Origin: Mantamonas sphyraenae STR306
Taxonomy: Eukaryota; Protista; CRuMs
NCBI GenBank assembly: GCA_026936335.1
Contig: JAPMXV010000040.1
Location: 136,138-200,137, forward strand
DNA: 64,000 nucleotides
Direction: 5' to 3'
Shown: piece by piece, positions 1,112 to 64,000 of the stretch
How positions within the stretch are numbered: position 1 is the stretch's first letter
Layout of the letters: each line of letters begins with the position of its first letter
Position numbers and translations under genes: made by a program
Notes under the pieces: model-generated
What the model was told of the DNA's origin: nothing
Databases searched by the model: none
What the model saw: the letters and a program-made list of their open reading frames with translations, nothing else

Positions 1112-2131
1112 CTACATGCGGTACCCGCAGTGATGGACCCAGTTCCTCACATCAGCAGCCGTAACATGCCCCAATGCAGTACAGATCGCCGCGAAAGTGC
1201 AAATGTCCACTCGATGAAATTCCCTGCGGAGGACCGCCTTGAACTTGCTAAACATGAGCTCGATGGGGTTGAGCGTAGGTGTGTAAGGCGGGAGAAACTC
1301 GACATCCACCCCATACCAGGTGCACAGCTGGCGTACAGCATCGCCTTTGTGGATGGAGCAGTTGTCCATGACCAGAACTGTTTGGCGGCAATCTCGCATG
1401 CGGGGCAAGAGGTCTTGCTCCAGGAACTCCATAAACAGCTGCCGGTTGTATGACCCCTCTCGCATTGTGTACGCTACCAGTGGCGAGCGCCCACCGGTGC
1501 TGATGGCCGCCAGCACGCTGATGCGCTTTTGCTTGGGATGGTTCTCCACAACGACCGCTGGTTGCCCACGTTTCGCACGACCATATCTCCTGTAGCACAC
1601 TCTGTTGTTCACTGCAGTTTCGTCCAAGAAGACCACGTTCGGCGCTCGGAACACACCGCGAATCCTCATTGCTCGAGTAAACTCGCGTGTGCGCGCCACG
1701 GTGGATTCCCTGAACCGTTGCTTGGCGATAGCACTCACCTTCTTGCGAGTCAGTCCCATGCGCGCACAAGAACGGCGAATTGTGGACAGAGATACCACCT
1801 TGTTGCGATGAAGAGCAACGGCTACTTGCAACTCGTCCAGGTACAGTCGCGGATCATCGGCCACCTGTTCAGCAATGAATTGGTCGTCATTGGCATCCAG
1901 GAGACGCCTGAACGGTGGTTGGGCCACAAGAGGGCGTACATGGCCCATGGCTCGGTGTTGACGTACAATCTTGGACACGACGGAAGGAGACACACCGAGA
2001 GCCTCCGCTGTGCCTCTGCACGAAGGACGCAAGCTGGATTGGTAGTGAAAGAGAATGCATTCTCGTTTGTCCGCCGAAAAGGCTTTGCCGTGGATGTATG
2101 ACCCACCCGTTGCATTCGTTTTGACGGTCAT
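1112..2131 (-). mobile_element. IS630/Tc1/mariner-superfamily DDE transposase (DD34E), intact ORF
   Basis: N-terminal HTH-like region (RGTAEALGVSPSVVSKIVR; LYLDEL...VSLSTIRR..MGLTRKK). Catalytic motifs VVFLDET, LVMDNCSIHKG and FLPPYTPTLNPIE, with 34 residues between the second D and the E. No TIRs found by eye. Confidence 0.9.
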
Positions 2132-2185
2132 TTTTGTTTTGCGTTGCTGACCACAGCGCGCGGAACGCCACAATACAGCAACCCA

Positions 2186-3505
2186 ATGAGCAGTTCGGGA
2201 GGGGTCAAACGCACCTTTTCGTCCATTTCGACACCCAACTCACCCGCGTTGCACTTTGAAGTGACAGCAAGGTGGCGCAAGGCGCGTGTGGGGCGGTTGT
2301 TCCTGCCGAGTGTGGCTGCAGAGACGCCGCTGTTCATGCCTGTGGGCACGCAGGGGAGCATCAAAGGAATGACCACGCGGCAGTTGGAAGACTTGGACTG
2401 CCGAATCATCCTGGGCAACACGTACCATCTGGGCCACCGGCCTGGGGCCGATCTGGTGGACGAACTGGGAGGCCTGCACACGTTTATGAACTGGAAGCGA
2501 GGCCTGCTGACAGACTCGGGTGGCTTCCAAATGGTGTCTCTGCTTGACCTGGCGCACATCACAGAAGAGGGGGTCCTGTTCAGGTCGCCGCACAACGGGG
2601 AGGAGATGATGCTGACGCCCGAGAAGAGCATCCAGCTGCAGAACGAGATTGGAGCCAACATCATCATGCAGTTGGACGATGTGGTGTCGTCCAAGGTGCG
2701 TGGGAAGCGTGTGGAGGAGGCCATGGAACGCAGCACGCGGTGGTTGGACAGATGCATGGACGCGCACGAGAAGAAGCAGACGCAGAACCTGTTCCCCATT
2801 GTGCAGGGGGGACTGGACGAGGCTTTGCGTGCACGTTCGTTGGAAGAGCTGATTGCACGGGACGCACCCGGGTATGCCATTGGCGGACTGAGTGGAGGGG
2901 AGGCGAAGGAGGACACGGCAAGGTGCATCGACCAGTGCACAAGCAAGCTTCCAAACGACAAGCCCCGGTACGCCATGGGCATTGGGTATGCCATCGACTT
3001 GGTTGTGTTTTCGGCCCTGGGCGTGGATATGTTTGACTGTGTGTTCCCCACGCGTACGGCGCGCTTCGGGCGTGCGCTGCTGATGTCTGGGGCCATCAAT
3101 CTCAAGTCGTCGCAGTTTGCGGATGACTTTGAACCCATCGACGCAGAGTGTGGCTGCATGGTGTGCCAACAGTACACGCGTGCATACGTGCATGCCCTGG
3201 CAAAGGGCGAGGGAGCTGGCCTGCAGTTGATCACCTACCACAACATTGCCTTTCAGATGCGCCTCATGCGCACCATCCGTCATCACATCACCGAGGGTAC
3301 CTTTGTCTCCTGGGTTTGCTGGTTTGTGCGCCAGCAGTACGGCGAGGACCCGGAGCAGTTTCCAACGTGGGTTGTGGATGCGCTGGCCACCGCTGGCATG
3401 GATGTGGTCAACCAGTGCGAGATTGATGAGGATGATGAGCAGGAGGGTGATGAGGAGGGTGACAAGAAGGAGGGTGGTGATGACATGGAGCAGGAGACAA
3501 TGTAG
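2186..3505 (+). CDS. QTRT1: Queuine tRNA-ribosyltransferase catalytic subunit (TGT)
   Basis: Motifs ETPLFMPVGTQG, ILGNTYHL, LLTDSGGFQMVSL, GYAIGGLSGGE, DMFDCVFPTRTARFG; Zn site CGCMVC...HN; intronless. Confidence 0.96.
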   Translation: MSSSGGVKRTFSSISTPNSPALHFEVTARWRKARVGRLFLPSVAAETPLFMPVGTQGSIKGMTTRQLEDLDCRIILGNTYHLGHRPGADLVDELGGLHTFMNWKRGLLTDSGGFQMVSLLDLAHITEEGVLFRSPHNGEEMMLTPEKSIQLQNEIGANIIMQLDDVVSSKVRGKRVEEAMERSTRWLDRCMDAHEKKQTQNLFPIVQGGLDEALRARSLEELIARDAPGYAIGGLSGGEAKEDTARCIDQCTSKLPNDKPRYAMGIGYAIDLVVFSALGVDMFDCVFPTRTARFGRALLMSGAINLKSSQFADDFEPIDAECGCMVCQQYTRAYVHALAKGEGAGLQLITYHNIAFQMRLMRTIRHHITEGTFVSWVCWFVRQQYGEDPEQFPTWVVDALATAGMDVVNQCEIDEDDEQEGDEEGDKKEGGDDMEQETM

Positions 3506-3706: not shown

Positions 3707-5404
3707 ATGAAACGAGCACACTTGGTCCTTGTGCTTTCACTGGGTTTGTTGATTGTGTTGCCTGTGGTGATTGTGCACTCGCGGCCTCGCATGGTGTCCG
3801 TTCCCAGCGATGCCGACCAGGCACACACCGATGGATACCGAGAGGAGGACGCTGGTGATGATCACACGCCCCATGCCCGAGACGACGACGACGACGACGA
3901 CAATGACGACAAGACCCAACCAGCCCCAACCATTGGCGACGAGGTCCGTGTGCGCAAGCAGTACCGTGAGTGCAAATGCTTGGCGGGCAAACCCAGCAGT
4001 CGCCTCGCCGATGAGCGCTGTGCACAATGTTTTGTAAGTGGAACACACTCCCATTCGCTTCGCATGTGGGTCATCTGCATGGCAGTTTGTGGCACGTACA
4101 TGAACGAGTGTGTGGGGTGACAACCCCGAAAGCGCGTAGTGAATTGACACGCCCTCCTTCTGCCACAGCGCATCGGCAGTAGCAGCAACGCACAGCGGGC
4201 AGGGTTCTATTTGGACCATAAGCCATGGGCAAGCGAATCTGAGGCACAGGATTTGCAGCGGGAACAGTGCCAGTCGACACAGCGAGCAGTCGTGGCTGCA
4301 CGAGCACTCAACCTGGGCAAGGAAGCTTCCGACCTGGACCAGGCCAATGAGGACCTAAAGAAGACGTGGCCCCTGCATGCCATGTCGCCCCCACGTGTGC
4401 CGACACGGGTGACGGACCTGCGAGAGGCACTGAAGGCCAACGATCCCGACCTGCAGCGCATCTACGAGGGCACAAGCGAAGCCCAGAGTGACGCTGGCAA
4501 AGTGGCCATGAACAAACGAGGACTGACGTTGAATTGGCACATGGTGGATGGGGTGGAAAAGCACAATGTGCCCATTTGGCTGCGTGTGTTTTCCCGCACG
4601 CAGCCCTTGGACAAAGTCATCGACGGCCTGCGTTCCATGGAGGGCAAGGAACGCACCGTTCTGTACATTTCTGTGGATGGAGCTCACAAACACGTGTTGC
4701 AGTTTATTGCTCAGCATGTGGACTTTATGCCCGCACGCATTCTCTTCCACGCCTTCACTCACGACGTCGAATCCTTCCCCGAACTCAAGACTATGGACCC
4801 ACGTGTGGCCCGCCTCAACTCCCACTTTAACTATGGCATGCGTTTGCTCTTTGACGTCTTTGGCTACGGGTACGTGGCCTTGCTGGAGGACGACATCATG
4901 CCTGGACCCGATTTCTACATGTACCACAGGGACATGATGCCCTACGCCCTGCTCAAACCCGACAAAGTGTTTTCTGTGGGTGCCATCATGCACGGGCCCA
5001 TCAACGACTGTGATTACATAGCCAACAAGCTGCTGAACCGTGGGTCGTGCCGCCTTGAGTCCATGAACCATCTTGTGCTGGAGCAGTACTACACCACATG
5101 GGGCTCAGGCATGCCCAGACACACCTTTATGGAATACTGGCCCCATCGTTGGACAAACATCTACGACGGCATCTTTTCAGGCCTCATCGGCAAGCGCTGG
5201 CATGTGACGCCGTGTTCGCACAGGGCCAAGTGGTTGCCCAACTCGGGCACCAACGGCACGGGAGGCAAACGCTGGAACCATGACTTGCCTCTGCTCAAGG
5301 GCGAACACAACACAGTGTACCACATTGAGCAGGTGGACGGCTTTGTCCAGACACAGGTGCTTCGCCGTCGCCATGCAAAACACACGTGCAGCAGCAAGCC
5401 CTAA
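3707..5404 (+). CDS. Type II membrane glycosyltransferase, GnT-I/GT13-like (exons 3707-4033, 4169-5404)
   Basis: N-terminal signal-anchor and acidic stem. GTAAGT...TTGAC...CAG intron 4034-4168 joins the exons in frame. LYISVDG and LLEDDIMPGPDFY resemble the GnT-I EDD motif. Confidence 0.65.
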
Positions 5405-5508: not shown

Positions 5509-8500
5509 TCAATCGCTGGTCTTGCGCTTGTCGTAGCGGACGACGCCGCCGCTCATGACGAGTTTGACACCCAGGTGCACTTCGCTGAGGGCAACCAGAT
5601 CGGCGTCCATGCCTACCTCGATTTGGCCCTTGTTGGGCAGCTTCAGGTAGCGTGCCGGGGTTCGTGTGACCAGAGGCAGGAGTTCTTCGACAGCCCATTC
5701 GTACTTGCGATGCAGGGCATGCAGAGTCTGCAGGATCGAGTCTGGGGTGCCCATGCCATACGAAATGACCTTGCCCTGGTCGTTGAACTGCGGGCGCGAC
5801 CCAAAGGCGTCGCTGCTCATGATCAGGCGGTCGATGGCGTATCCGTCGGCCTTGGCACGGTGCAAGCACATGGCCGGGATGTTGGGGCCAGCGGTGATGT
5901 CAATGTATCCACCCTGGGCCAACCAGTCCAGAGAATCCTCAAAGAGCTCTTCCGTCTTGCTGCAATGCGTGGGCAGGATCTGGTCGATGGGCACCATGCC
6001 CTTGTTGACCAACTCGCGCAGGGGACCCAGCATCTGCTCGCCGCGGCCCAAGTGTGCATAGAGCACACCCTTCTTGCCCGAAATCATGCCTCCCACCATG
6101 CACTGCTTGGTCACCTCCATCAGCTGCTCAAACGACGGGTTGGAACCGCGGTGATCGCTGATGGCAAGTTCACCCACTCCAATGACCTTGTCCACCACGC
6201 ACAGATCGCTCTGCACGCTTCCGGTCAGTGTCACGGGCGGCACGGCGTACGAGCCACAGTACATCCAGGACGACACGCCCTTGGCGTCCATCTCCCTGCA
6301 CTTCATCAGCAGCGTCTCCAGCTTGCGCGAATAGTCATCTGTGCCCAGCACACCCACGGCCGTGGTGATGCCACTCTCCAGAATCATCGATGCGCTGGCC
6401 TCCGACGTGCGAGACCACGGGCCGGCCTCGCCACCGCCTCCAATCAGGTGCTGGTGGATGTCCACGAAACCCGGCACAAGCAGCAGACCATCCACGTCGA
6501 TTTCGTTGATGTCTGCCAACGAGCGCAGGAGATCGCGTTCGTTCTCCTCCAGAATGCCCACAATCTTGCCACCACCCAACAGCAGACTCACTTCTCCCAG
6601 GTCGGAGGGAGAGTACACACGCTTGGCGTTCAGCACCAGGGTCAGCTCCTTGTTCACCGGCTTGGGGCCAGCCGACGGGCCGCTCATGTCCTGGCGCGTG
6701 CTCGAGACCTGCTCGTGAGCCTCAAGCGGCTTCTGCAGCAGACGCGTCGTCTTCTCCTTGAGGCCATGCACGTGCAGCGTGTCGCGGCCAATGGCCACGT
6801 ACTGGCCACTGCGTCCGGGCAGATGCACCATGGGGAACACACCAAAGGGCTTGCCCGCCTGCAAGGCAATGTTGGCGTTCACCAGGCGGTTGAACAACGC
6901 AAACGCAGTCAGGTCCTTCGAGGGCTTGATCTTGAATGCAATCCAAGCGTAGTTGCCGTCCTCGGGCGCATGGTTGGCCACAAACAGCTTGGGGAAGTGG
7001 GCGCCGTTGAAGCGGGCCGTGTTGACGTCCGACAGGTACGGCTCGCCGTTGACCATCAGGAAATCAACGCCACCAGGGCCACGCGGCTTGGAGCCACGCA
7101 GAAAGGCCTTCATGATGCGAGTGCACCTGTCCTGGCACTTTTCGTCAATCTCACTGGGGCGCCAGCCGGCATAGCCTGTGCCCACCATGATCTGGTCCAC
7201 ACACGGGGTGCCGTAGATGCGCGAGCCAAAGTAGTGGCACGCCGGCGACAGGATGACACCGTCGGGCGCACGGTCGATGTCCAGCATCTCTTCCAGCAGG
7301 ACGTCACCGTAGCCAAAGTCGTACACCTGCAGCTCCTCCACGGAACTGACAAACATGATGCCCTCACCTGCGGCTCCGTTGACAGGCTTGATGACCACCT
7401 TTTCGGCGTCCATCAGCTCGTAGGCCTTGAGCAGGTCGTCTCGGGTGGAGCACGTGTATCCATCGGCCACAGTGATGTCACCCAGCTGCATCTGTTCCAA
7501 CACACTGGGGGTCTCCAGGTCCTGCACGTGACGGTGCAGAATCGACTTGTTGCCGTATTGGCTCTGCCACACAGGGTCCTCTGCAAAGATGCTCACACCC
7601 AAGCGCTCCAGGCGGCTCATCCAGCGCATGCCGTTGTCGCACGGCGTGTAGGGGACAATCATCCAGCCCTGCGGGCCGCACTCGCTTGTCACCACCAGCG
7701 ACTCCAGCTTGGCCAGCATGGCCTCGTCGATTTCGTCGTCCATGAGGTACTTGGTGCCCGACGTAAAGAAGAATTGGTCGGGACTCAGCTCCAGCGTCTC
7801 GCACAGGAAGCGTGCAAACTCGCGGCCCTCGGGGAACTCACCCGGGAGAATGACAACATCCATGCCCGGGCGCACGAGTGCTGCCACGCGGTGTGACAGG
7901 TTGACACGCTGCGAGATGCGACGGTACGACGGATGGCACGACTGCACCCAAATGCGTCGCATGTGCGTCTCGCTCAGCGACACAAACTTGGCTTCCTCGG
8001 TCACCGAGCCGCGGCCGAGCTCGTCGCAAAGCATGTCCATGCGTTCCATGCTGTCCTGCAGGCCGTTCTCGGTCTTGTTCACAGCCAGGAACGCGCCGCT
8101 GTACGGCTCCACCGACAGCGGAAAGATGCCGCCGCGTGAGCTCTTGCTGTGCTTGGGCAACAAGGCAAGCTTCTCCTCGCGCATGGCCGTCCACAGACGC
8201 CAAAAGTCGGTCTCGGAGGGGAACACGCGCAGGAACATCTGCACAAAGGGCAGCTTGCGCACGTAGGTCTCGTGGAAGCGGCAGACAAAGTGTTCGAGGA
8301 TGAAGCGGTTGACGACAACCTCGGACAGCACAGGCTGGTTGTTGCGCACGTGGAACGACACAAATCCGGCACCCTTGAACTCAGCCAGCTGCACGATGCT
8401 CTGGGCCACCTGCACGGCCGTGTTCAGGCAGGCCTTGGGGCAGGTGGCGTTGCGGATGCCCAGAAGAGTGCCACCCTGGCTGCACAGACGCTCCAGCAGC

Positions 8501-11500
8501 ACAGAGGTGAGCACGCTTCCGCCCAAGAAGGGCACATTGATGTTGAACAGGAAACCGTCACGCGTGTTCTGCAGGCCGGCTCCGTCCTGGATCAGCATCA
8601 TGCCCGGCTTGGCCGTGAGCAGCATGTTGATCTCTGCCTGCGAGCTGACCACGTGCATTTCCTGCTCTGCACCGTGGCGCTTGACAAGAAAGATGTCTGT
8701 GTTCAGCTTCTCGATGGCTGCGTTCGTGGCCTTCTTGTTGCCACTGCGCGTGTAGAACCCGTTGAGCGTGGGCACGTTGTACTCGTTGGCTGCCATCTCC
8801 TTGACCCCCTGTGCATCGATGGCCAGGCGGCGCGACGGCTTCTTCACCTTGGGCGTCTCCCTGGGCGACGACGGTTGCGAGTTGGCCGGCGACGGCGAGG
8901 CGGACGACGAGGAAGAGGAGCTCGACGAGGAGGACGCTGCCTCGACGTCGTCGGTAAACGCCTCTTCGTCCTCCACCTGCACCTGCGGCGTGGTAGCCTG
9001 CACGGAAGGAGGCGAGGGGGGGCACAGCGGCAGCAGCAGCAGCGGCAGCGGCAGCAGCCTGCGTGGACTCTGTCATCTTGCGCGCAAGCACTTCGTTGAC
9101 AGTGCCAAAGCGACGCTCGATGTCCATATCCTCAGTAAAGATGTGCAGACGAGACGAGCCGACGCGCTCGATGAGGGCCTGGAGCATGCGGTCGCGACGC
9201 TGGGGCACAAGGGTCACCTGACGGCTCTTGTGCTGACTCATGAAGCGCTGGACGGCGTCGGCACACTCGTCGAGGTCGGTCTCGAGGTCGGCGACGACGA
9301 TCTGCTCGATGTCCAAGGACATGACGGTGCGCACAAAGTCGACATAGTCGCTGCGGTCCTTGACGAAACGAGAGGACATGATGACCATGTCACGCTCGGT
9401 ACGCAGCATGCACAGAGTGGCCACGGAGCTGATGGGCGACTCCTCGTCGTTCATGATCCAAATGCGTGCGTCGCTTCGGCGAGACAGATCGCGGCGACGG
9501 AAAAAGCTGACGTCCTTGTTCTCTGCACGCTGGGTGATCTCGCGCTCGGCCTCGGTGAGCATGTCGTTGAGGGTCGTGTTGAGGGTCTTGAGCGAGGACA
9601 CCTTGTTGCTGGCGCACACAAAGACGGTGAGGTCTTTGTTGAGAAAGACGGGCATGATTCCCTTCTTGTTGGAGCTGCCGAGCTTAAAGTCGACTGCGGC
9701 GGTGTGCAGGCCTTCCACCACCGACCAAGGGGGCAGCTTCTGGCCAGACAGCAGGCAGCGCCACAGTTTCTTGCCCAAATCCATGCGTGCAATGAGCTGG
9801 AGCATCATGTGGGTCAAGGTGATGGTACCCACGTGCAACTCGATCAGCTGCAGCTTGCCCGACGGCTTGACCTGCTTGGATTCCTCGGCATCCCCTTCCG
9901 AGGAAGAGGATGAGGAGGACGACGACGACGACGACGCGCTCTTGTCTTCCAGCACCTGGAAAACAAACTCGGCGTTGGTCACCTTGAGCTTCTTCTGCAG
10001 CTGGGAAGCAATTTCGTTGGAACGCTGGAGGAGCTCCGGGGCAATCTTGTCGGTGACGTTGGTGATGCCCGAGCCGTTGTGTGCAGCAAAGTGCACGGGG
10101 GTGTTGGGCATGACCTTGGTCTGCCACACCAGGACACTCCAGCGCTTGTTGGAAACGAGCGGGGTCGGGCGTCGCAGGACAACCTCGTCTTCAGGCAGGA
10201 TGGGCAGCATGGACAGCTGGTGTGCGTTGTCGATGGTGTAGCGGCTCTGTTCGACGCTGCTGTTGACATGCACCTCCACGCTGCTCTGCACACCCAGGGC
10301 CTCGTAGGCCTCGATGAGATGGTCGTTGCCCGTGCAGACAATGCCCTCGACAGTTTCCAAGTCCTCGGCCCACGACGAAATGGTGGTGTTGGATGTCTTG
10401 CTGCCGAGCTGGCGGTAGACGAGGGAGGAGCCCGTGACGTCGGTGAAGGGAGCCAGGACAGCCGGGCGATACAGCTGGAGGGCGCTGAGGACATGGCTAA
10501 GGAGGTCGTTCTCGTCGCTGACCAGGAGCACAGACGGGCGCTGCTTGGTCTCTGTCTCGAAGGAAAGGAGGAAGGCCTGGAGGGGAGCGAGGCTGTTGCT
10601 CACATCCTGCTCGTCGATCCACATGATGCTGGAGCTGCTGAGGCCCATGATCTTTTCGATGGTGTCGACGAGCTGGCGGTTGGCGGTGTCGTCATGCAGG
10701 AGCACAACCTGGTTCTCGCCGAGCAGATGCAGACCCGGGTTGCCGAGGAAGCTGCTGTTGACGCTGCCTGGCACGTTGCAATGCAAGGTGATGGGCATCC
10801 AGACGGTGACGTTGAACTGGTCCGGGGACTTCTTGGTCAACTGATGGCTGATTGTGGAGCGCTTGATGGGCTTGCTGAGCTGCTCCATGACAGCGGCCTT
10901 GAGATCGTCGAGATCGTTGGGGGTCGAGGCAAAGGCGTGCATGAAGCTGGAGGACGAGCTCTCGATGAAGGAGAGGGGAACGCAGGCGGAGAGGCCAGCC
11001 TGGATAAGTCGCATCCAGGCGTTGAAGACATCCAGGGAAGGATGTGCGTTGGCAAACCAGCAGGTGCTGTAGGCGTCGGGAGCGTTGCGCTGGTGGAGCA
11101 ACTCTGCAGCGTGTGCCTTTTGCAGGGGACCAAACTGGGCATCGATAAGCTTGAGAGAGCCCTTGACGACAATGAAGCAGAGCTGGGCAAAGGCACAGGA
11201 CTGGGCCTTGCCCGAGAGGGACTCGACGAGTGTGCGTGCGGTGTCCTGCATGGTCTCGCGTTCCTCCGCCGTGGACATGGTGGAGGGCAGTCCGTAGCCC
11301 ACAGTCTGGTTACCGATGCTGAGCACGTCAATGACAATGTCGCTGACCTTGCCGTCAAAGATGTTGACGAGGAAGCGCTTGCTGTAGCCATTCTGCTCGC
11401 GGTCGGGTTCGTACATGGAGCGAAGGATGCGAGCCGAAACACTCATGTTGACGAAGCGCAGCTCGCCTGCGCTGACGGCAGTGGCGACAACGGCACTCTC

Positions 11501-12022
11501 TGTAAGGTGGACAGGGAATTCGAGGCTGGCCTGGTCGCATTCGAGGGCACGGTTGGCGACGAGAAGATCTTGGGCGGTGCGACACAGGTAGCCCGGGGCA
11601 ACGGTGACACCTTCGGGCAGATTGAGCGAGGTATAGCGGGGCTCGTTGGAGGAACCCACACGACTGACGAGGAGGGTGCGCACGGTCTTGTCATTGCTCA
11701 GATCCTCGAAAATGGGCAGGATACGTGAGTTTTGGTTTTCTTTGGCGAGAGTGTCCAAAATGCTCTCAAGATCGTCCTCGATGGCGACGTGCACCTGAGC
11801 GGCGGTGGTCTGCTGGGTGGCCATGTAGAATTCGGCATAGGAGTCGGACCAGAGCTCGGCGCATTGCGGGCCAAGGACGAGGTGATCCTTTGCAGTGAGG
11901 AGGGAGAGGGCCACTTGCAGCTGCTCGCCAACCTGTCGCTTTCCGAACACGTGGCTTTCGGGCAGCTCGGCCACGTAGATAATCGGGTTTTGGGCAGTAG
12001 ATTCAGAAGAAGAAGACGCCAT
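5509..12022 (-). CDS. Large fusion: four tandem ATP-grasp-like modules plus C-terminal isoaspartyl dipeptidase (IadA-type); joins ORFs 8558..12034 and 5509..9003 across a 1-nt frame break near 9016-9022
   Basis: IadA motifs PGFVDIHQHLIGGGGEAGP, GITTAVGVLGTD, GELAISDHRGS, ILPTH, SSDAFGS. Intact ATP-grasp motifs VVIKPVNGAAGEG, LLEEML, GGVDFL, SDVNTARFNG. Internal homology among four modules, with module 3 straddling the frame break. Confidence 0.85.
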
Positions 12023-12465: not shown

Positions 12466-14245
12466 TCACTCGGCCTTGCCCGCCTGGAGCTTTTCATATT
12501 TCTCGCGGGCCGTGTGTGGCGACGGGGTGGGCAGGTTGTCCACCTTGTCGAGGGCGGCAGCGTAGCGCTTGTAGGTTTCGTAGTTGCGCATCTGGATCTG
12601 CCAGCTGGTGTCCATTCGGTACTCGATCCCGTTCTCCTTGGCCCATTTTTGGACGATGGGGCGGAGGGACGGGTAGTAGTAGCGGGGGATGGTGGGGAAC
12701 AGGTGGTGCTCCAGTTGGTACTGCATGCCACCCCACAGGTACTCATCGATGGGGTTGTGTGTCTGCACGTCGCGTGTGGTGCGGAACTGGTCTTGGACAA
12801 AGGCGAAGCTGACTTCCTCCAGAAGCTCCTCGCTCTGGTGGGTGACCGTCACAATGATGGCGACACCGTATCCGGAAAGCAGAATGGAGCCGAGGGCAAC
12901 CTTCCAAGGCAGCATGAGCATCCAGGCGCTGTTTGCGCTCATCAGGAAGAGCTCGAGGTAGTTGTTGGTGGCGAGTGCAAACTGCCACGATTGGATGCGC
13001 CACGAGACGTAGAGGAAGGAGAAGACCTGCAGAAGAGGGCACGAGAGGGGGAAAGGGGGGAGGGTGGGGGTGTTAGACAGAGGCAGATCGGGTGAAGGTG
13101 CGAGAGGCAAGGGAGGCGGTGCAAGAGAAGGGCACACGTACAAAGTTGTAGTAAACGTGCTGGAAACGACGGAACCAGACATCCTCGCTTTCACGGGGCA
13201 GCCACAGGTGCAGGATCTTGTCGTTCTTGAGGTCGTCGTCGTAGAGGAGCGAGTTTGTAAGAACGTGGTGGGTGTTGTGCTTGCGCTCCCACCAGCCACG
13301 GGAGAAGCTGGGCAGGAAGGCGAGGGCATAGCCAAGGATAAGGCTGCCCTTGCCCCGGCCATGGATGTAGTCATGGGCGGTCCAGCCAGCCTGCTGCTGG
13401 GCAAGGCCGAGGAGAAGCAGGGCCCACCAGGGATGGGACCAAGCAAGATAGGTGCCCAGGATGGCCATGGCATAGATGTGGCCGACATTGAGGATGTCCA
13501 CAAGCCAGTTGCGCTCAAACCAGCCCTGTTGAGTGGTGGGCAGAGGGCCAACAGGTGGCAGGGGAGGAGGGTCAGCAAGGGAGCCACACATGCGAGCGAA
13601 GTGCAGCTCGAGAAGGGTCGATGCGCATGTTCCGTGTGCGCTAGACCCCGGAGGGGAGACTGGCACCACACAAAGGAAAGGCAAGGGCAATGAGGAGGCG
13701 TGGGGCACAGGATGTGGGAGTTGCAGGCCATGTGTGACGCGCAGGGAGGGAGCAAGGTGGGAAACGGCCCGGCGGACAAAAGAAAGGGGCCTGCGGCAGG
13801 ATTGTTCCAGCACGTACGTCCTTTTCCAGCTGCACACGCAGCTTGCGGAAGCTCTTTTCCACGCTGCCGGACTCGGGCAGGGCCAGAGCAGCAGCAGGCA
13901 GGTCCTCGTCGGCCACAATCTTCATGCCCGCGAGCTTTTCGCGCGCATCCATCGAGTGGAGCGAATAGAAGGCGTCCGTGGCGTCCTGCAAATGCCAGCG
14001 CTCAATGCTCTCTGCGAGGGGCGGGGTGGATGTAAGCACGAGCACAACATGGACAGATGTGTGGCGCAGTCATGCAAGGTGATGACGGTGTACATGCAGC
14101 GGTGTACAAGGTGCACAGCGTGGCGAAAGGGCAAACACGTACCAGCACCGCCGGGATGCGCAGCAACCCAGTATTTGCAGTCGTACCAGTTGCCGTCGAT
14201 ACGGATAAGCACAGACTTTTTCGCGTCAAATGTGTTCTTGGTCAT
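12466..14245 (-). CDS. Cytochrome b5-fusion front-end fatty acid desaturase, paralog 1 (4 exons)
   Basis: HPGG heme motif; His boxes HDYIH, HNTHH, QLEHH; three GT-AG introns. Confidence 0.92.
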
Positions 14246-14311
14246 GATGGGTGGAATAAGCGTGTGGGGGTGTTGGGCAAAATGCAAGTGTTTCTTGATG
14301 GATGCCGTGCT

Positions 14312-16936
14312 TCAGCCCGCGTGAGCCAGGACGCGCGCGTACAAACGCATGCGCTCGTCGTCGGATTGATCGCCGTGGCGTTCCTGGCCCTGAATGTCGA
14401 AACTAAGGCACATCCATCGCTCGGCTTCGGCCCAGCGTTCGAAAAGAACACATCGCAGGGCGAGATTCCAAGCCGTGCCGGCAAGCCAGCGCAGCTGCAG
14501 GTCTGCGTCAGCTCGCAGTTGTGGCGACTCGTTGAGGGCCGCCATTTCGTCACGTGCGTCGCAAAACCCGGGCCACAACTGCTCTGTGCTGGCCTGGTCG
14601 AGCTGGGCGGCCAGGGAGAGAACGAGCAGGTGAAGACGATCCAGAGGCGAATCATCCATGGCAGCACGCATGTGGTCCACAAGCAGCTGGTGGACGACAC
14701 CTGTCCGCTTGTACTCTGTGCAAAGAGCATGCATGCCTTGCCAGCAATCTGTCCGGCGACTGGGCGTGGGAATGTGCGCCACGTCGTCCAGTACCTTGCG
14801 CAGGTCGTGTTCGGGGCCGTTGAGCAGCAGGACGCATTCGAAACGCATCAACAAGACGTCTGTATGCTCGTGGTGTTGCTTGCCGACGTCGCACTGGAGC
14901 AGCTGAGCCTGCAGCTGATCCACCGCGGATGGATCCGCACCACCATGCCGCAGATCGTCCATTTGCACGTGCAACAGCATGACCAAACTCTTTCGCGCAG
15001 AGGCATGGTCGCCACAGAGCAGGCTGAGATCCTGGGAACAGCTGAGCAGGTCGACCGCGTCCTGAACGTTTGACGCGGCACGGCTGATGTTCCACAATGC
15101 ATCTGCCATCCACTTGAGAACTGAGTTGTCACTTGACGAGGCTTCCAGGCGTGCAATAGAGTCTTGAGCACAGTGGGCAAGGAGAGAGTAGTCCAGCAGC
15201 AGCGTGGACGTGTCGGGGACGCGAACCCACGCCTGAAGGAGACAGTGGAGACGATCCAGTGCCTGTGTGGCGTCGGCTTGCAAGGACAACTGCAGCGCAC
15301 GGATTGCCACATGCAGTGAATTGCTGCGCAGAGCGGAGTGGACAATGCGGGCAAGGCAGACGGGATCGTAGGAAGGAGCTTGACTCAAGCGTCGAAGCAG
15401 ATCGAGCAGCATCGTGTGGTCGTGCTCGTCGTCCTGATCATGCTCAGCCGCACCCAAGTGTGCCAGGAGTGCCATGTAAAGAGCATGGGCGTCTTCCTCG
15501 TCTTCATCTCCATTGGACGGCTGATTCAGCAGGACATTGGCGCATTCGAGGGCGTCGTTCCAGTGTTGCAGGGCAAGGAGGCCCTGCATGCAGCCAAGCC
15601 GAGCCATGTGTTGCAAATGAGGGTAGTGGCCTTCACCCAAAAGGTGACTGAGCATCTGGTACCACTTGAGGCCCTGGTCGTGGTGTGTGCGCTGGTAGCA
15701 ACGGCTCGCGTGGGCCGAAGCGATGGATGCGAGCTGGTGCATCTGCTCAGCCTCCAGGCGCAGCGTGCCGTCCATGTGTCCTGCACCGCAGGCGCTCATG
15801 CACTGTACGGCCTCCATGTCCATATCGCGTTGCAAGAAGCAGGCCATGGCGCGGAGCAGCAGGGCTTCGTCGCGGTCCACAAGCTCCTGCAACCGCTCAC
15901 GAAGCGTGTCGTTGTCCAGATGGTGCATGTTCTGCTCAACGACATGCATGCAGGGCGTGGCATCCCACGGGAGGCCTTGCAGGGACCCACAGGCAACACT
16001 TTGCAGGAGTTGCTGAGCTTCGTCGTGTCCATCGGTGTGCAGAAAGAGCAGTTGGATGAGGTACGCCACATGTGTGTATGTGGATTGCAGACGCACGCAT
16101 TCGCGTGCGTTTGATACGGCCAGCTGCCACAGGTCCTGTGCCTGCTGGCATTGGCTCAACAGTCTTCGTGCGAGCGCATCCGAGCGCCGCTCCATGTCCA
16201 CGTTTGCATCCAGGCCTGCCTGAAGAAAGTCGGCGCTGACCTTGTATTCGCCTTTGTCGTGCAGGTGCTGACCTGTGCTGTACAGCTGGTCGACGAGAGC
16301 GCGACGCATGGCAGAGACGGCTGGAGCTTCATGCGCCTCGCGTCTTTGGAGCAGCTCCTCGCTGGCGTCATGGAGTGCATTGAGGGCTTGTTGTGTGGAT
16401 GTGGCGGCGCCCACTTGGATGGCGAGGCGGTGAAAGGCAAAATCCTGCTTGTCAGGATCGCGCGGTTTTGTTTCTGCCAGCCATTGTGATCGCACGTCCC
16501 GTGCGTCTTGCAGAGCGTGCACAGCGTCATCATGCTGATCAGAGCGCACACAGAGGGTGCCATATTGAATGTGAAAGTGCAGAATCTGGGCGAGGTGGCT
16601 GGGTGAGTGACGCGCTGGTTTGCTCGAATTGCGGTCGATTCCCGAAAGGGCGAGACGTCCCAGCGTGCATGCAGCACGCCGCAAAGCGAGCATAGCAGCT
16701 GCGTTGGATGGAAGGGACGAAGTGGAAGAGGAGGATGCAGACTGCGCACTGGACAGGCTGGACAGGCGAACGCTGCAATTCCAGGCTCGGCCTGCAGCAC
16801 GGTACAGCTTGTTGTGGCCAAACGACGAGCTGTTGTCGTCCATGGCATCTTGCAGGGCCTGCAGCTGGGTCTCTGTGGGCACCATCTCCTTTTGGATGTG
16901 TGCTTCAATGCGCTGCAGTGCAGTGTCGAGGGACAT
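14312..16936 (-). CDS. ZIP4: Meiotic TPR protein ZIP4/SPO22/TEX11-like
   Basis: All-helical TPR-like 874-aa ORF. Segments LYSTGQHLHDKGEYKVSADFL, LKWMADALWN and LRWLAGTAWNLALRC..ERWAEAERWMCLS resemble conserved TEX11/Spo22 blocks. Confidence 0.7.
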   Translation of the reverse strand: MSLDTALQRIEAHIQKEMVPTETQLQALQDAMDDNSSSFGHNKLYRAAGRAWNCSVRLSSLSSAQSASSSSTSSLPSNAAAMLALRRAACTLGRLALSGIDRNSSKPARHSPSHLAQILHFHIQYGTLCVRSDQHDDAVHALQDARDVRSQWLAETKPRDPDKQDFAFHRLAIQVGAATSTQQALNALHDASEELLQRREAHEAPAVSAMRRALVDQLYSTGQHLHDKGEYKVSADFLQAGLDANVDMERRSDALARRLLSQCQQAQDLWQLAVSNARECVRLQSTYTHVAYLIQLLFLHTDGHDEAQQLLQSVACGSLQGLPWDATPCMHVVEQNMHHLDNDTLRERLQELVDRDEALLLRAMACFLQRDMDMEAVQCMSACGAGHMDGTLRLEAEQMHQLASIASAHASRCYQRTHHDQGLKWYQMLSHLLGEGHYPHLQHMARLGCMQGLLALQHWNDALECANVLLNQPSNGDEDEEDAHALYMALLAHLGAAEHDQDDEHDHTMLLDLLRRLSQAPSYDPVCLARIVHSALRSNSLHVAIRALQLSLQADATQALDRLHCLLQAWVRVPDTSTLLLDYSLLAHCAQDSIARLEASSSDNSVLKWMADALWNISRAASNVQDAVDLLSCSQDLSLLCGDHASARKSLVMLLHVQMDDLRHGGADPSAVDQLQAQLLQCDVGKQHHEHTDVLLMRFECVLLLNGPEHDLRKVLDDVAHIPTPSRRTDCWQGMHALCTEYKRTGVVHQLLVDHMRAAMDDSPLDRLHLLVLSLAAQLDQASTEQLWPGFCDARDEMAALNESPQLRADADLQLRWLAGTAWNLALRCVLFERWAEAERWMCLSFDIQGQERHGDQSDDERMRLYARVLAHAG

Positions 16937-17070: not shown

Positions 17071-18815
17071 TCACTCAGCCTTGCCAGCCGCGAGTTTGAG
17101 GAACTTTTCGCGGGCAGTGTGGGGCGACGGGGTGGGCTTGACGTCGATCATGTCGATGACAGCAGCGTTGCGCTTGTACGTGTTGTAGTTGCGCACCTGG
17201 ATCTCCCAGCTGGTGTCCATGCGGTAGTCGAGGCCGTTCTCCTTGGCCCACGCCTGGATGATGGGTCGCAGAGACGGGTAGTAGTAGCGGGGCATGGTTG
17301 GGAACAGGTGGTGCTCCAGCTGATACTGCATGCCGCCCCACATGTACTCGTCGATGGGGTTGTGTGTCTGCACGTCGCGTGTGGTGTTGAACTGGTTGGT
17401 TGCAAAGTCAAAGTCGACACCCTCCACGAGCTCCTCGCTCTGGTGGGTGGCCGTCACCACAATGGCCACAGCGTAGCCCGAGAGCAGAATGGAACCGATG
17501 GCCACCTTCCAGGGCAACATGAGCATCCAAGCGGTGTTGGAGGCCATCAGGACGAGCTCGAGGTAGTTGTTGGTTGTCAGTGCGTGTTGCCATGACTGGA
17601 TGCGCCACGAGACGTAGAGGAAGGAGAAGACCTGTGGTTGGGTTGGGCGGGTTTGCGGGAGGTTAGAAGAAGAAGAAAAGAGAGCAGGGAGCAGGGAGCA
17701 GGGAGCAGGGAGCAGGGAGCAGGGAGCAGGGAGCAGGGAGCAGGGAGCAGGGAGCAGGGAGCAGGGAGCAGGGAGCAGGGAGCGGGGAGCACGTACAAAG
17801 TTGTAGTAGATGTGCTGGAAGCGACGGAACCAGACATCCTCGCTCAGGCGTGGCAGCCACAGGTGCAGGATCTTGTCGTTCTTGAGGTCGTCGTCGTAGA
17901 CGAGAGAGTTTGTGAGGGCATGGTGGGTGTTGTGCTTGCGCTCCCACCAGCCACGGGAGAAGCAGGGGATGGTGGAAAGGGCGTAGCCAAGGAAGTAGGC
18001 CACCTTGCCACGGCCATGGATGTAGTCATGGCCCACCCAAGCGGCCTGCTGTTGGGCAAGGCCAAGGACGAGGGTGGCCCACCAGGGATGGGACCAAGCG
18101 AGATAGGTGCCAAAAACAGCCAGCACGTACACGTGGATCACCGTCAGCACGTCGATCAACCACATGCGCTCAAACCAGCCCTGCGAGGAGAGGTGCCCGG
18201 AAGTAGGACGCGCCGTGGCGGTGTGAGTGGCCGGTGGGAAGGGAAACTCACGGCGGGAGCCAAAAAGCGCAGTAACGAAAAATCCACGTCATGGATCCTT
18301 CCCGAACTCTGCACACGGCGTGTACAGGTGCGTGCGTGGCCCTTTTTACGACCACACGTACCTGTTGTTCCAGCTGGGAGCGCAGAGTGCGGAAGTTCTT
18401 CTCGGCAGCCGGCATCTCGGGCAGCGCCAGCGCAGCAGCCGGCAGCTTCTCCTTGGGCACCTCGGGCATGCGAGCGAGCCGCTCGCGGGCCTCATCAGAA
18501 TGCAGGGCCAGAAACACATTGGTGGCGTCCTGCAGATGCCAACGCTCGATGCTCTCTGATGTACAATAGTACAGGAAACATGGGACACGTGTGCGTGAAA
18601 CGTGTAAGCAGCTCAATGCAGCGGTAGCGCGGCGTGCGTGTTTAGGAAGCGCTCATTTTTTGTTGATGTGAAGCACGACGCGGACCGCAGCACTCACCAG
18701 CGCCTCCCGGGTGCGAAGCAACCCAGTGCTTGCAGTCCACCCACTTGCCGTCGATGCGAATCAGCACAGGCTTCTTGGCATCGAATTTCGAGTCAGCGTT
18801 TGCCACGTCGCTCAT
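17071..18815 (-). CDS. Cytochrome b5-fusion front-end fatty acid desaturase, paralog 2 (4 exons)
   Basis: HPGG, HDYIH, HNTHH, QLEHH; same intron positions as 12466-14245 and highly similar exons. Confidence 0.92.
17682..17790. repeat. Intronic heptamer tandem repeat (GAGCAGG)x14 plus a degenerate unit
   Basis: 14 perfect units at 17682-17779, inside intron 3 of desaturase paralog 2. Confidence 0.97.
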
Positions 18816-63784: not shown

Positions 63785-64000
63785 AGGGTTAGGGTTAGGG
63801 TTAGGGTTAGGGTTAGGGTTAGGGTTAGGGTTAGGGTTAGGGTTAGGGTTAGGGTTAGGGTTAGGGTTAGGGTTAGGGTTAGGGTTAGGGTTAGGGTTAG
63901 GGTTAGGGTTAGGGTTAGGGTTAGGGTTAGGGTTAGGGTTAGGGTTAGGGTTAGGGTTAGGGTTAGGGTTAGGGTTAGGGTTAGGGTTAGGGTTAGGGTT
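63785..64000 (+). repeat. Telomeric repeat (TTAGGG)n, chromosome end
   Basis: 36 perfect hexamers running to the window end, G-rich strand oriented 5'->3' outward. Confidence 0.99.

Follow-up and report, generated by a model that had tools for sequence, protein, structure and literature searches.

Can a single eukaryotic polypeptide both make and break the same amide bond? The question is raised by a gene of the protist Mantamonas sphyraenae STR306, located in a 64,000-nucleotide stretch of contig JAPMXV010000040.1 (positions 136,138 to 200,137; hereafter, the window), in which ATP-grasp modules are followed by the isoaspartyl dipeptidase IadA. A preliminary description, made from the sequence, had proposed a new system of four tandem ATP-grasp modules fused to IadA that would form and hydrolyse a beta-aspartyl dipeptide or polymer. 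The coordinates, strand, four modules and C-terminal IadA given there are borne out by a profile of the module and by the family model TIGR01975 (341.4 bits versus a cut-off of 331.25; 344.7 bits in a genome search), but only the last module carries the residues of a ligase. The reading that we tentatively favour, as falling just short of an even chance, is that this module (module 4) would make a beta-Asp-X dipeptide, that the fused IadA would cleave it, and that the three degenerate modules would serve as scaffold or switch.

The module profile was built from 108 relatives and run on the joined protein, with an X at the point where the gene as written in the window breaks into two open reading frames (ORFs); the two ORFs were also searched separately. 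Four modules were recovered, with independent E-values, in order, of 9e-28, 1e-8 and 4e-5, 2e-8 and 3e-26, and 1e-153, and hhalign gave probabilities of 98.8 for module 1 and 96.5 for module 2. That these modules and IadA form one polypeptide, as had been proposed, is supported because the same layout is found as a complete transcript ORF in M. plastica and in choanoflagellates. The best relative comes from M. plastica, whose ORF (complete, 2,009 amino acids (aa)) is colinear with the fusion protein over all five parts, with identities of 32%, 30%, 33% and 58% for modules 1 to 4 and 54% for IadA, while the complete ORFs of choanoflagellates comprise 1,260-1,308 aa.

The four modules are homologous copies, as first described, but ligase residues are found only in module 4. 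From module 1 the two Lys, the Gly loop, the Asp/Asn for the metal, and the Arg are all missing; module 2 contains a poly-Ser insert (about 9897-9944); and module 3 retains nothing of the catalytic motif but Arg and His and is interrupted by an Ala/Pro/Ser/Glu-rich insert of ~90 aa (about 8781-9052) that is absent from M. plastica. Judged by their residues, modules 1-3 are pseudo-enzymes, and because their catalytic residues are missing the protein is predicted to contain one ligase, not four; four active ligases were ruled out on this ground. Module 4 has K1492, K1545, a Gly loop (1549-1554), E1577, D1653, D1665-x-N1667, and R1670, a catalytic set conserved in 19 of 19 intact IadA-fused modules, together with the pocket residues Q1610, Y1617, W1620, and N1672-G-A. 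It scores above the cut-off of PF02655 (25.6 versus 23.2 bits), and its structure model (pLDDT 96.5, pTM 0.94) has only ATP-grasp proteins as top structural matches. A single-sequence AlphaFold model of the 1,164-aa 3' ORF was set aside (pLDDT 34.5). From these residues and this fold, module 4 is likely active as an amide ligase.

The IadA domain likewise appears intact, in agreement with the preliminary description. It aligns with E. coli IadA (1ONW) at E=5e-81, and 11 of 13 E. coli active-site positions are identical. The metal site consists of H1856, H1858, H1990, H2019, and D2071 with a bridging Glu, E1951, and the substrate residues include E1865, T1894, Y1925, R1958, and S2075. Among the E. 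coli substrate residues G75, E77, T106, Y137, R169, R233, and S289, six of the seven are identical, R233 being replaced by K2022; E77, T106, Y137, and S289 are those which we take to hold the beta-aspartyl group. Metal and beta-Asp-binding residues are retained across the fusions. E. coli K162 corresponds to E1951, the bridging Glu by which type I IadA is defined (PMC7774594), and IadA is described as cleaving beta-Asp dipeptides (PMC9974463). Candidates for the usual eukaryotic clean-up of isoaspartyl residues (PF01112 and PF01135, PCMT) are present in the genome, and IadA is therefore not obviously needed for housekeeping.

By fold, module 4 is supported as being of the PGM1/pre-ATP-grasp type, as had been suggested. 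The closest structures to the model are BesA (Z 31.7, rmsd 3.0, 383 residues aligned), 8YND (Z 30.5), and PGM1 (Z 30.1), followed by LdmS (Z 23.6); the PGM1/BesA-type match spans the whole module, including the N- and C-terminal domains (Z 30-32, 364-383 residues). A butirosin Glu-ligase cluster is among its nearest Atlas matches. Module 4 itself gives no match to PF18604, PF18105, or NF042917, for which weak matches occur in 18, 3, and 2 of the 108 relatives, respectively.

Features of the fusion gene in the window, with the evidence by which each was assigned
Feature	Position	Strand	Extent	Basis or remark
Fusion gene	5509..12022	(-)	2,170 aa, 6,513 nt	intronless reading suffices once a 1-base surplus is discounted
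Module 1, pseudo-ATP-grasp	10874..12022	(-)	aa 1-383	profile and hhalign
Module 2, pseudo-ATP-grasp	9554..10795	(-)	aa 410-823	profile and hhalign; most diverged
Module 3, pseudo-ATP-grasp	8023..9490	(-)	aa 845-1333	profile
Module 4, predicted intact ATP-grasp ligase	6736..7977	(-)	aa 1349-1762	profile, model, residues
Type I isoaspartyl dipeptidase IadA	5512..6660	(-)	aa 1788-2170	TIGR01975, residue comparison
Run of seven C	9016..9022	(-)		likeliest place of a 1-base assembly surplus

Fusions of the module to IadA are found in M. plastica (four modules), five choanoflagellates (two modules), Guillardia theta, and environmental eukaryotes, several of which have four-module genes with introns; Hanusia phi has a four-module fragment. 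The fusion is thus retained in CRuMs, choanoflagellates, and cryptophytes, with two to four modules per protein, of which nearly always one is intact (P0021 has two, near-identical). The intact module is the last one in Mantamonas and choanoflagellates and the second of four in the cryptophyte type. In the latter, the IadA-adjacent module keeps the ATP-site Lys, loop, and Glu, has lost D-x-N, and branches among intact modules in a quick tree with long branches, which suggests repeated origins of dead copies. The branch that contains the fused modules is rich in eukaryotes and modestly supported (SH-aLRT 92). The eukaryotic IadA domains form one group versus seven bacterial sequences (support 100/100, with sparse sampling). 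An IadA homologue search at a strict cut-off of 1e-90 returned two proteins, and bacterial sampling is accordingly thin, too thin to name a donor or to date the fusion.

ATP-grasp enzymes form an acyl phosphate at the expense of ATP, and then an amide. By the reading that we favour, module 4 would bind Mg-ATP and phosphorylate an acidic amino acid at a carboxylate, most probably that of the Asp side chain, and the amino group of another amino acid would then react with the acyl phosphate to give beta-Asp-X. Such a dipeptide would resist ordinary peptidases and could serve as a protected store of nitrogen and amino acids or as a compatible solute, until the fused di-metal IadA, on demand, released the free amino acids again by hydrolysis; modules 1-3 would be dead duplicates retained as a scaffold or as an allosteric switch against futile cycling. 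We infer the beta-aspartyl product from the fusion partner and the pocket, and it is the simplest reading because that partner is an intact beta-aspartyl peptidase. It is plausible that IadA acts on the ligase product; what that product is, and what the dead modules do, are guesses. We know of no characterised enzyme with free-standing beta-aspartyl ligase activity. BesA ligates through the side-chain gamma-carboxyl of Glu (bioRxiv 10.1101/2025.10.10.681649), and the clade can therefore activate a side-chain carboxyl. A wider proposal, that diverse protists make a beta-aspartyl isopeptide as a nitrogen store or osmolyte with such a ligase, that pseudo-ATP-grasp domains switch between ligase and hydrolase, and that the fusion may predate the split of Amorphea/CRuMs from cryptophytes, is possible but more doubtful than probable as a whole.

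The choice of Asp draws on LdmS, the L-Asp-L-Met ligase of Staphylococcus encoded beside the M20D peptidase HmrA (PMC9486568, PDB 7R8P). Ten LdmS residues (K136, K173, Q244, Y252, D288, D301, N303, R305, N307, and G308) have identical counterparts in module 4 by motif, all kept in 19 of 19 intact IadA-fused modules, and R1378, also conserved, is a possible counterpart of the Arg with which LdmS binds the acceptor carboxylate. The Asp pocket of LdmS comprises Q244, Y252, N255, N307, G308, and S309, where alanine at N255 or S309 kills the enzyme (PMC9486568); four of the six match Q1610, Y1617, W1620, N1672, G1673, and A1674 of module 4. Since the two differing positions are essential in LdmS, module 4 does not count as an LdmS; membership was ruled out on the W and A at two of three Asp-pocket positions together with the lack of a match between module 4 and the LdmS family model NF047900 (cut-off 475 bits), a model that also matched nothing in the genome, in a search that contained no positive control match. 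An acidic substrate related to that of LdmS, held another way, is plausible.

Several observations weigh against the reading that we favour. Module 4 is 12-16% identical to any characterised ligase, its mapping onto LdmS is by motif and not by superposition, and W1620 for N255 and A1674 for S309 could mean that Asp is held in a flipped orientation or, just as well, that the acid is a different one. IadA enzymes are broad in substrate (PMC9974463, PMC7774594). The partners also separate: modules without IadA are encoded in Chroomonas, Baffinella, Mallomonas, Picozoa, and Mesostigma, although some of these may be incomplete gene models. Salpingoeca rosetta encodes two modules with IadA absent within 8 kb, and Coccomyxa a free IadA with the module absent within 10 kb. 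Among prokaryotes, a pairing of the module with iadA did not appear at any of 12 loci. In favour of a ligase-hydrolase pairing, an amide hydrolase gene of one of five unrelated kinds lies within about 5 kb of the free module at 8 of the 12; this count was taken without a chance control, however, and four of the eight share a related peptidase, as at L006, L007, L011, and L059, at least three of which are related, the gene is a PepT-like M20 gene directly downstream.

The alternative that best survives keeps the same make-and-break logic with another acid (the gamma-carboxyl of Glu, an N-acyl amino acid, or an alpha-carboxyl), IadA being retuned to that amide. The top fold match is a gamma-glutamyl ligase, BesA, and apart from the M20 genes the prokaryotic relatives adjoin an EgtC-like hydrolase (L009), two AstE/AspA-like genes (L014), an M42 hydrolase (L005), and a class I glutamine amidotransferase-like gene with a GCS2 ligase (L001); the departures at W1620 and A1674, and at K2022 in IadA, point the same way. 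Nevertheless, the IadA residues presumed to hold the beta-aspartyl group are kept in the fusions, and the pocket of the prokaryotic clade differs (T for N1672, N for W1620), so that its hydrolase partners need not predict the eukaryotic substrate. We regard this alternative as rather unlikely.

Mantamonas and choanoflagellates eat bacteria, and the two activities could also follow one another in a forward pathway, in which IadA splits beta-Asp dipeptides derived from the damaged protein or cyanophycin of prey and module 4 takes up one of the freed amino acids for an end product on which IadA does not act. IadA is described as cleaving dipeptides of this kind (PMC9974463), and the free modules without IadA in many protists indicate that the ligase can work alone. 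Against this, free Asp should be plentiful in the cytosol, so channelling would gain little, and the PF01112 enzyme could perform the salvage; on balance we consider such a pathway improbable.

ATP-grasp enzymes such as RimK and TTLL tag proteins, and PGM1 accepts peptide nucleophiles, which would fit an enzyme that writes and erases isoaspartyl tags on proteins and binds its targets through modules 1-3. The dead modules are in fact kept one-to-one between the two Mantamonas species, but module 4 matches RimK (Z 13.9) and TTLL11 (Z 14.0) far less well than small-molecule ligases, R1378 as a possible acceptor-carboxylate Arg is conserved, and IadA is described as a dipeptidase; the tag is thus highly improbable. 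An assembly line of four stations, or a cyanophycin-like polymerase adding one residue per module, would account for four tandem modules and for weak profile matches to the cyanophycin synthetase G domain (E about 4e-5). It is extremely unlikely, in that modules 1-3 are without ATP, metal, and carboxylate residues, the number of modules varies from two to four while one stays intact, and the cyanophycin match covers a generic ATP-binding stretch only. TIGR02068 (cut-off 850 bits) gives 15 bits on module 4 and at best 24 bits in the genome, where neither cyanophycin synthetase (cphA) nor cyanophycinase (cphB) was found above cut-off. With one module predicted to be active, cyanophycin synthesis was ruled out, and the polymer proposed in the preliminary description is not supported.

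Last, the reading frame itself has to be accounted for, since the window as written contains two minus-strand ORFs that overlap out of frame near 9020 (break ~9016-9023). Contigs of runs X1-X3 (depth 43-81) span 6150-9896 with 3,746 letters versus 3,747 in the window and a single gap; as this gap is absent from the indel table, it is placed inside the skipped repeat 9019-9064. A contig piece of X4, a shallow run that carries further single-base gaps, has 319 letters versus 320 over 8875-9194. All four runs are from one study and three may underlie the assembly, so that they represent a short-read disagreement with the consensus and not an independent sample. Computed deletion of any one base within 8875-9075 restores a single 2,170-aa ORF. 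Homopolymer slips are a typical error of PacBio RSII reads. The assembly was built from PacBio RSII reads (PMC10492846). The frame break is most likely an error of the reference assembly because a base is missing from the contigs of four runs at this place. A real break (pseudogene, two genes, or a gene needing a mini-intron or ribosomal frameshift), for which the two ORFs and 35 GT-AG pairs able to mend the frame could be cited, has a negligible chance given that the missing base alone restores the frame, that the read type favours such slips, and that the M. plastica orthologue is one ORF. The gene is a single copy among eukaryotic genes, ~52 kb from the telomere, and contamination was ruled out by its copy number, its neighbours, and the telomere-ended contig.

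Several neighbourhoods deserve description in their own right. The telomere (unit TTAGGG, 36 copies at 63785-64000) closes a stretch of strong G-skew (up to 0.46) at 33000-64000 of the window. An intact IS630/Tc1-type DDE transposase ORF (353 aa, 1112-2173 (-), PF13358 E 5e-27) abuts the start of a queuine tRNA-ribosyltransferase ORF (2144-3505 (+), PF01702 E 9e-146). A 397-aa ORF with weak MGAT2/GNT-I glycosyltransferase matches (4211-5404 (+)) is convergent with the fusion gene and ends ~100 bases from its stop. Two similar fatty-acid desaturase genes with introns (12466-14290 and 17071-18800 (-)) flank an 874-aa ORF without Pfam match (14312-16936), and the second has a 7-base tandem repeat, seemingly intronic (17682-17791). 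Elsewhere, the S. rosetta locus (L026:8001-12635, PTSG_04013), unlike those of five other choanoflagellates, offers a natural loss for comparison, while the free IadA of Coccomyxa subellipsoidea (L025:10001-12562) contains introns and groups with the fused eukaryotic IadAs.

Prokaryotic single-module relatives occur in six Patescibacteria-type genomes, with 35-38% identity to module 4, and the module was found in only 2 of 401 Patescibacteria-group genomes surveyed, both already among the six. It was not found in single-module scans of viral and metagenome contigs, in a tight-alignment scan of viral contigs, or in plasmids. The recurring Patescibacteria-type pair of free module and M20 peptidase, as in L059:1-6165, is accompanied by a TrmB regulator in two of its four loci, and amino-acid-type binding proteins are encoded nearby in L059. 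Around the free module of L001 (3924-7925), a second ATP-grasp gene 8 kb away (12927-14324) has an LdmS-like match (E 2e-18), and the locus is a possible small-peptide cluster. The two AstE/AspA-family genes of L014 lie at 6289-8044; CphZ, a beta-Asp-Arg hydrolase, belongs to this family (PMC9974463).

What appears to be new is an unnamed ligase subfamily, a eukaryotic group of IadA, and their fusion. As the preliminary description had supposed, the literature holds no account of the module family or fusion that our search could find; a key amidoligase review lay outside that search, and a prior mention is possible. Relatives are publicly named 'hypothetical', 'ATP-grasp domain-containing', or 'dihydropyrimidinase'. 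The findings suggest that marine and freshwater protists, choanoflagellates and cryptophytes among them, contain a small-peptide metabolite, and name candidate enzymes for both making and breaking it. They add a eukaryotic group to IadA, an enzyme described as bacterial, and flag a likely one-base error that splits the fusion gene in the M. sphyraenae reference assembly. A ligase dedicated to beta-aspartyl products, if confirmed, would add to the known biocatalysts, and the dead ATP-grasp copies gained repeatedly about a single live site are a clean case for studying pseudo-enzyme regulation.

Among known systems, the glutathionylspermidine and trypanothione synthetase-amidases, which likewise occur in protists, combine an ATP-grasp amide ligase with the hydrolase that opposes it in a single chain, but have an N-terminal cysteine amidase, another ligase subfamily, and no pseudo-ligase repeats; no Pfam match to the CHAP amidase or GSP_synth was obtained on any part of the fusion protein. 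LdmS and HmrA likewise pair an ATP-grasp amino-acid ligase with a peptidase (PMC9486568), and LdmS shares the catalytic and Asp-pocket motif Q, Y, D, D-x-N, R-x-N-G, yet it forms an alpha-linked dipeptide as a one-domain monomer encoded in an operon and is 13% identical to module 4. Since such pairings are known, the term 'new system' is too strong. The cyanophycin system (CphA1/CphA2, CphB, and IadA/IaaA/CphZ; PMC9974463, PMC10273328) shares ATP-grasp chemistry, IadA, and beta-Asp dipeptides as nitrogen currency, and differs in that the fusion is without a Mur-like domain and aligns over the generic ATP-binding stretch alone. Passage of the equivalog cut-off, metal and substrate residues, and the bridging Glu liken the hydrolase to known type I IadA (TIGR01975; 7CF6, 5XGW, 1ONW), from which it differs in being eukaryotic, C-terminal to ATP-grasp modules, and in having K for R233. 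The Streptomyces ligases BesA, PGM1, and 8YND, which are single-domain enzymes of natural-product clusters without fused hydrolase or dead copies, are the best structural matches to the whole of module 4 (TM about 0.72-0.74), and BesA forms a side-chain-linked dipeptide, as is proposed here.

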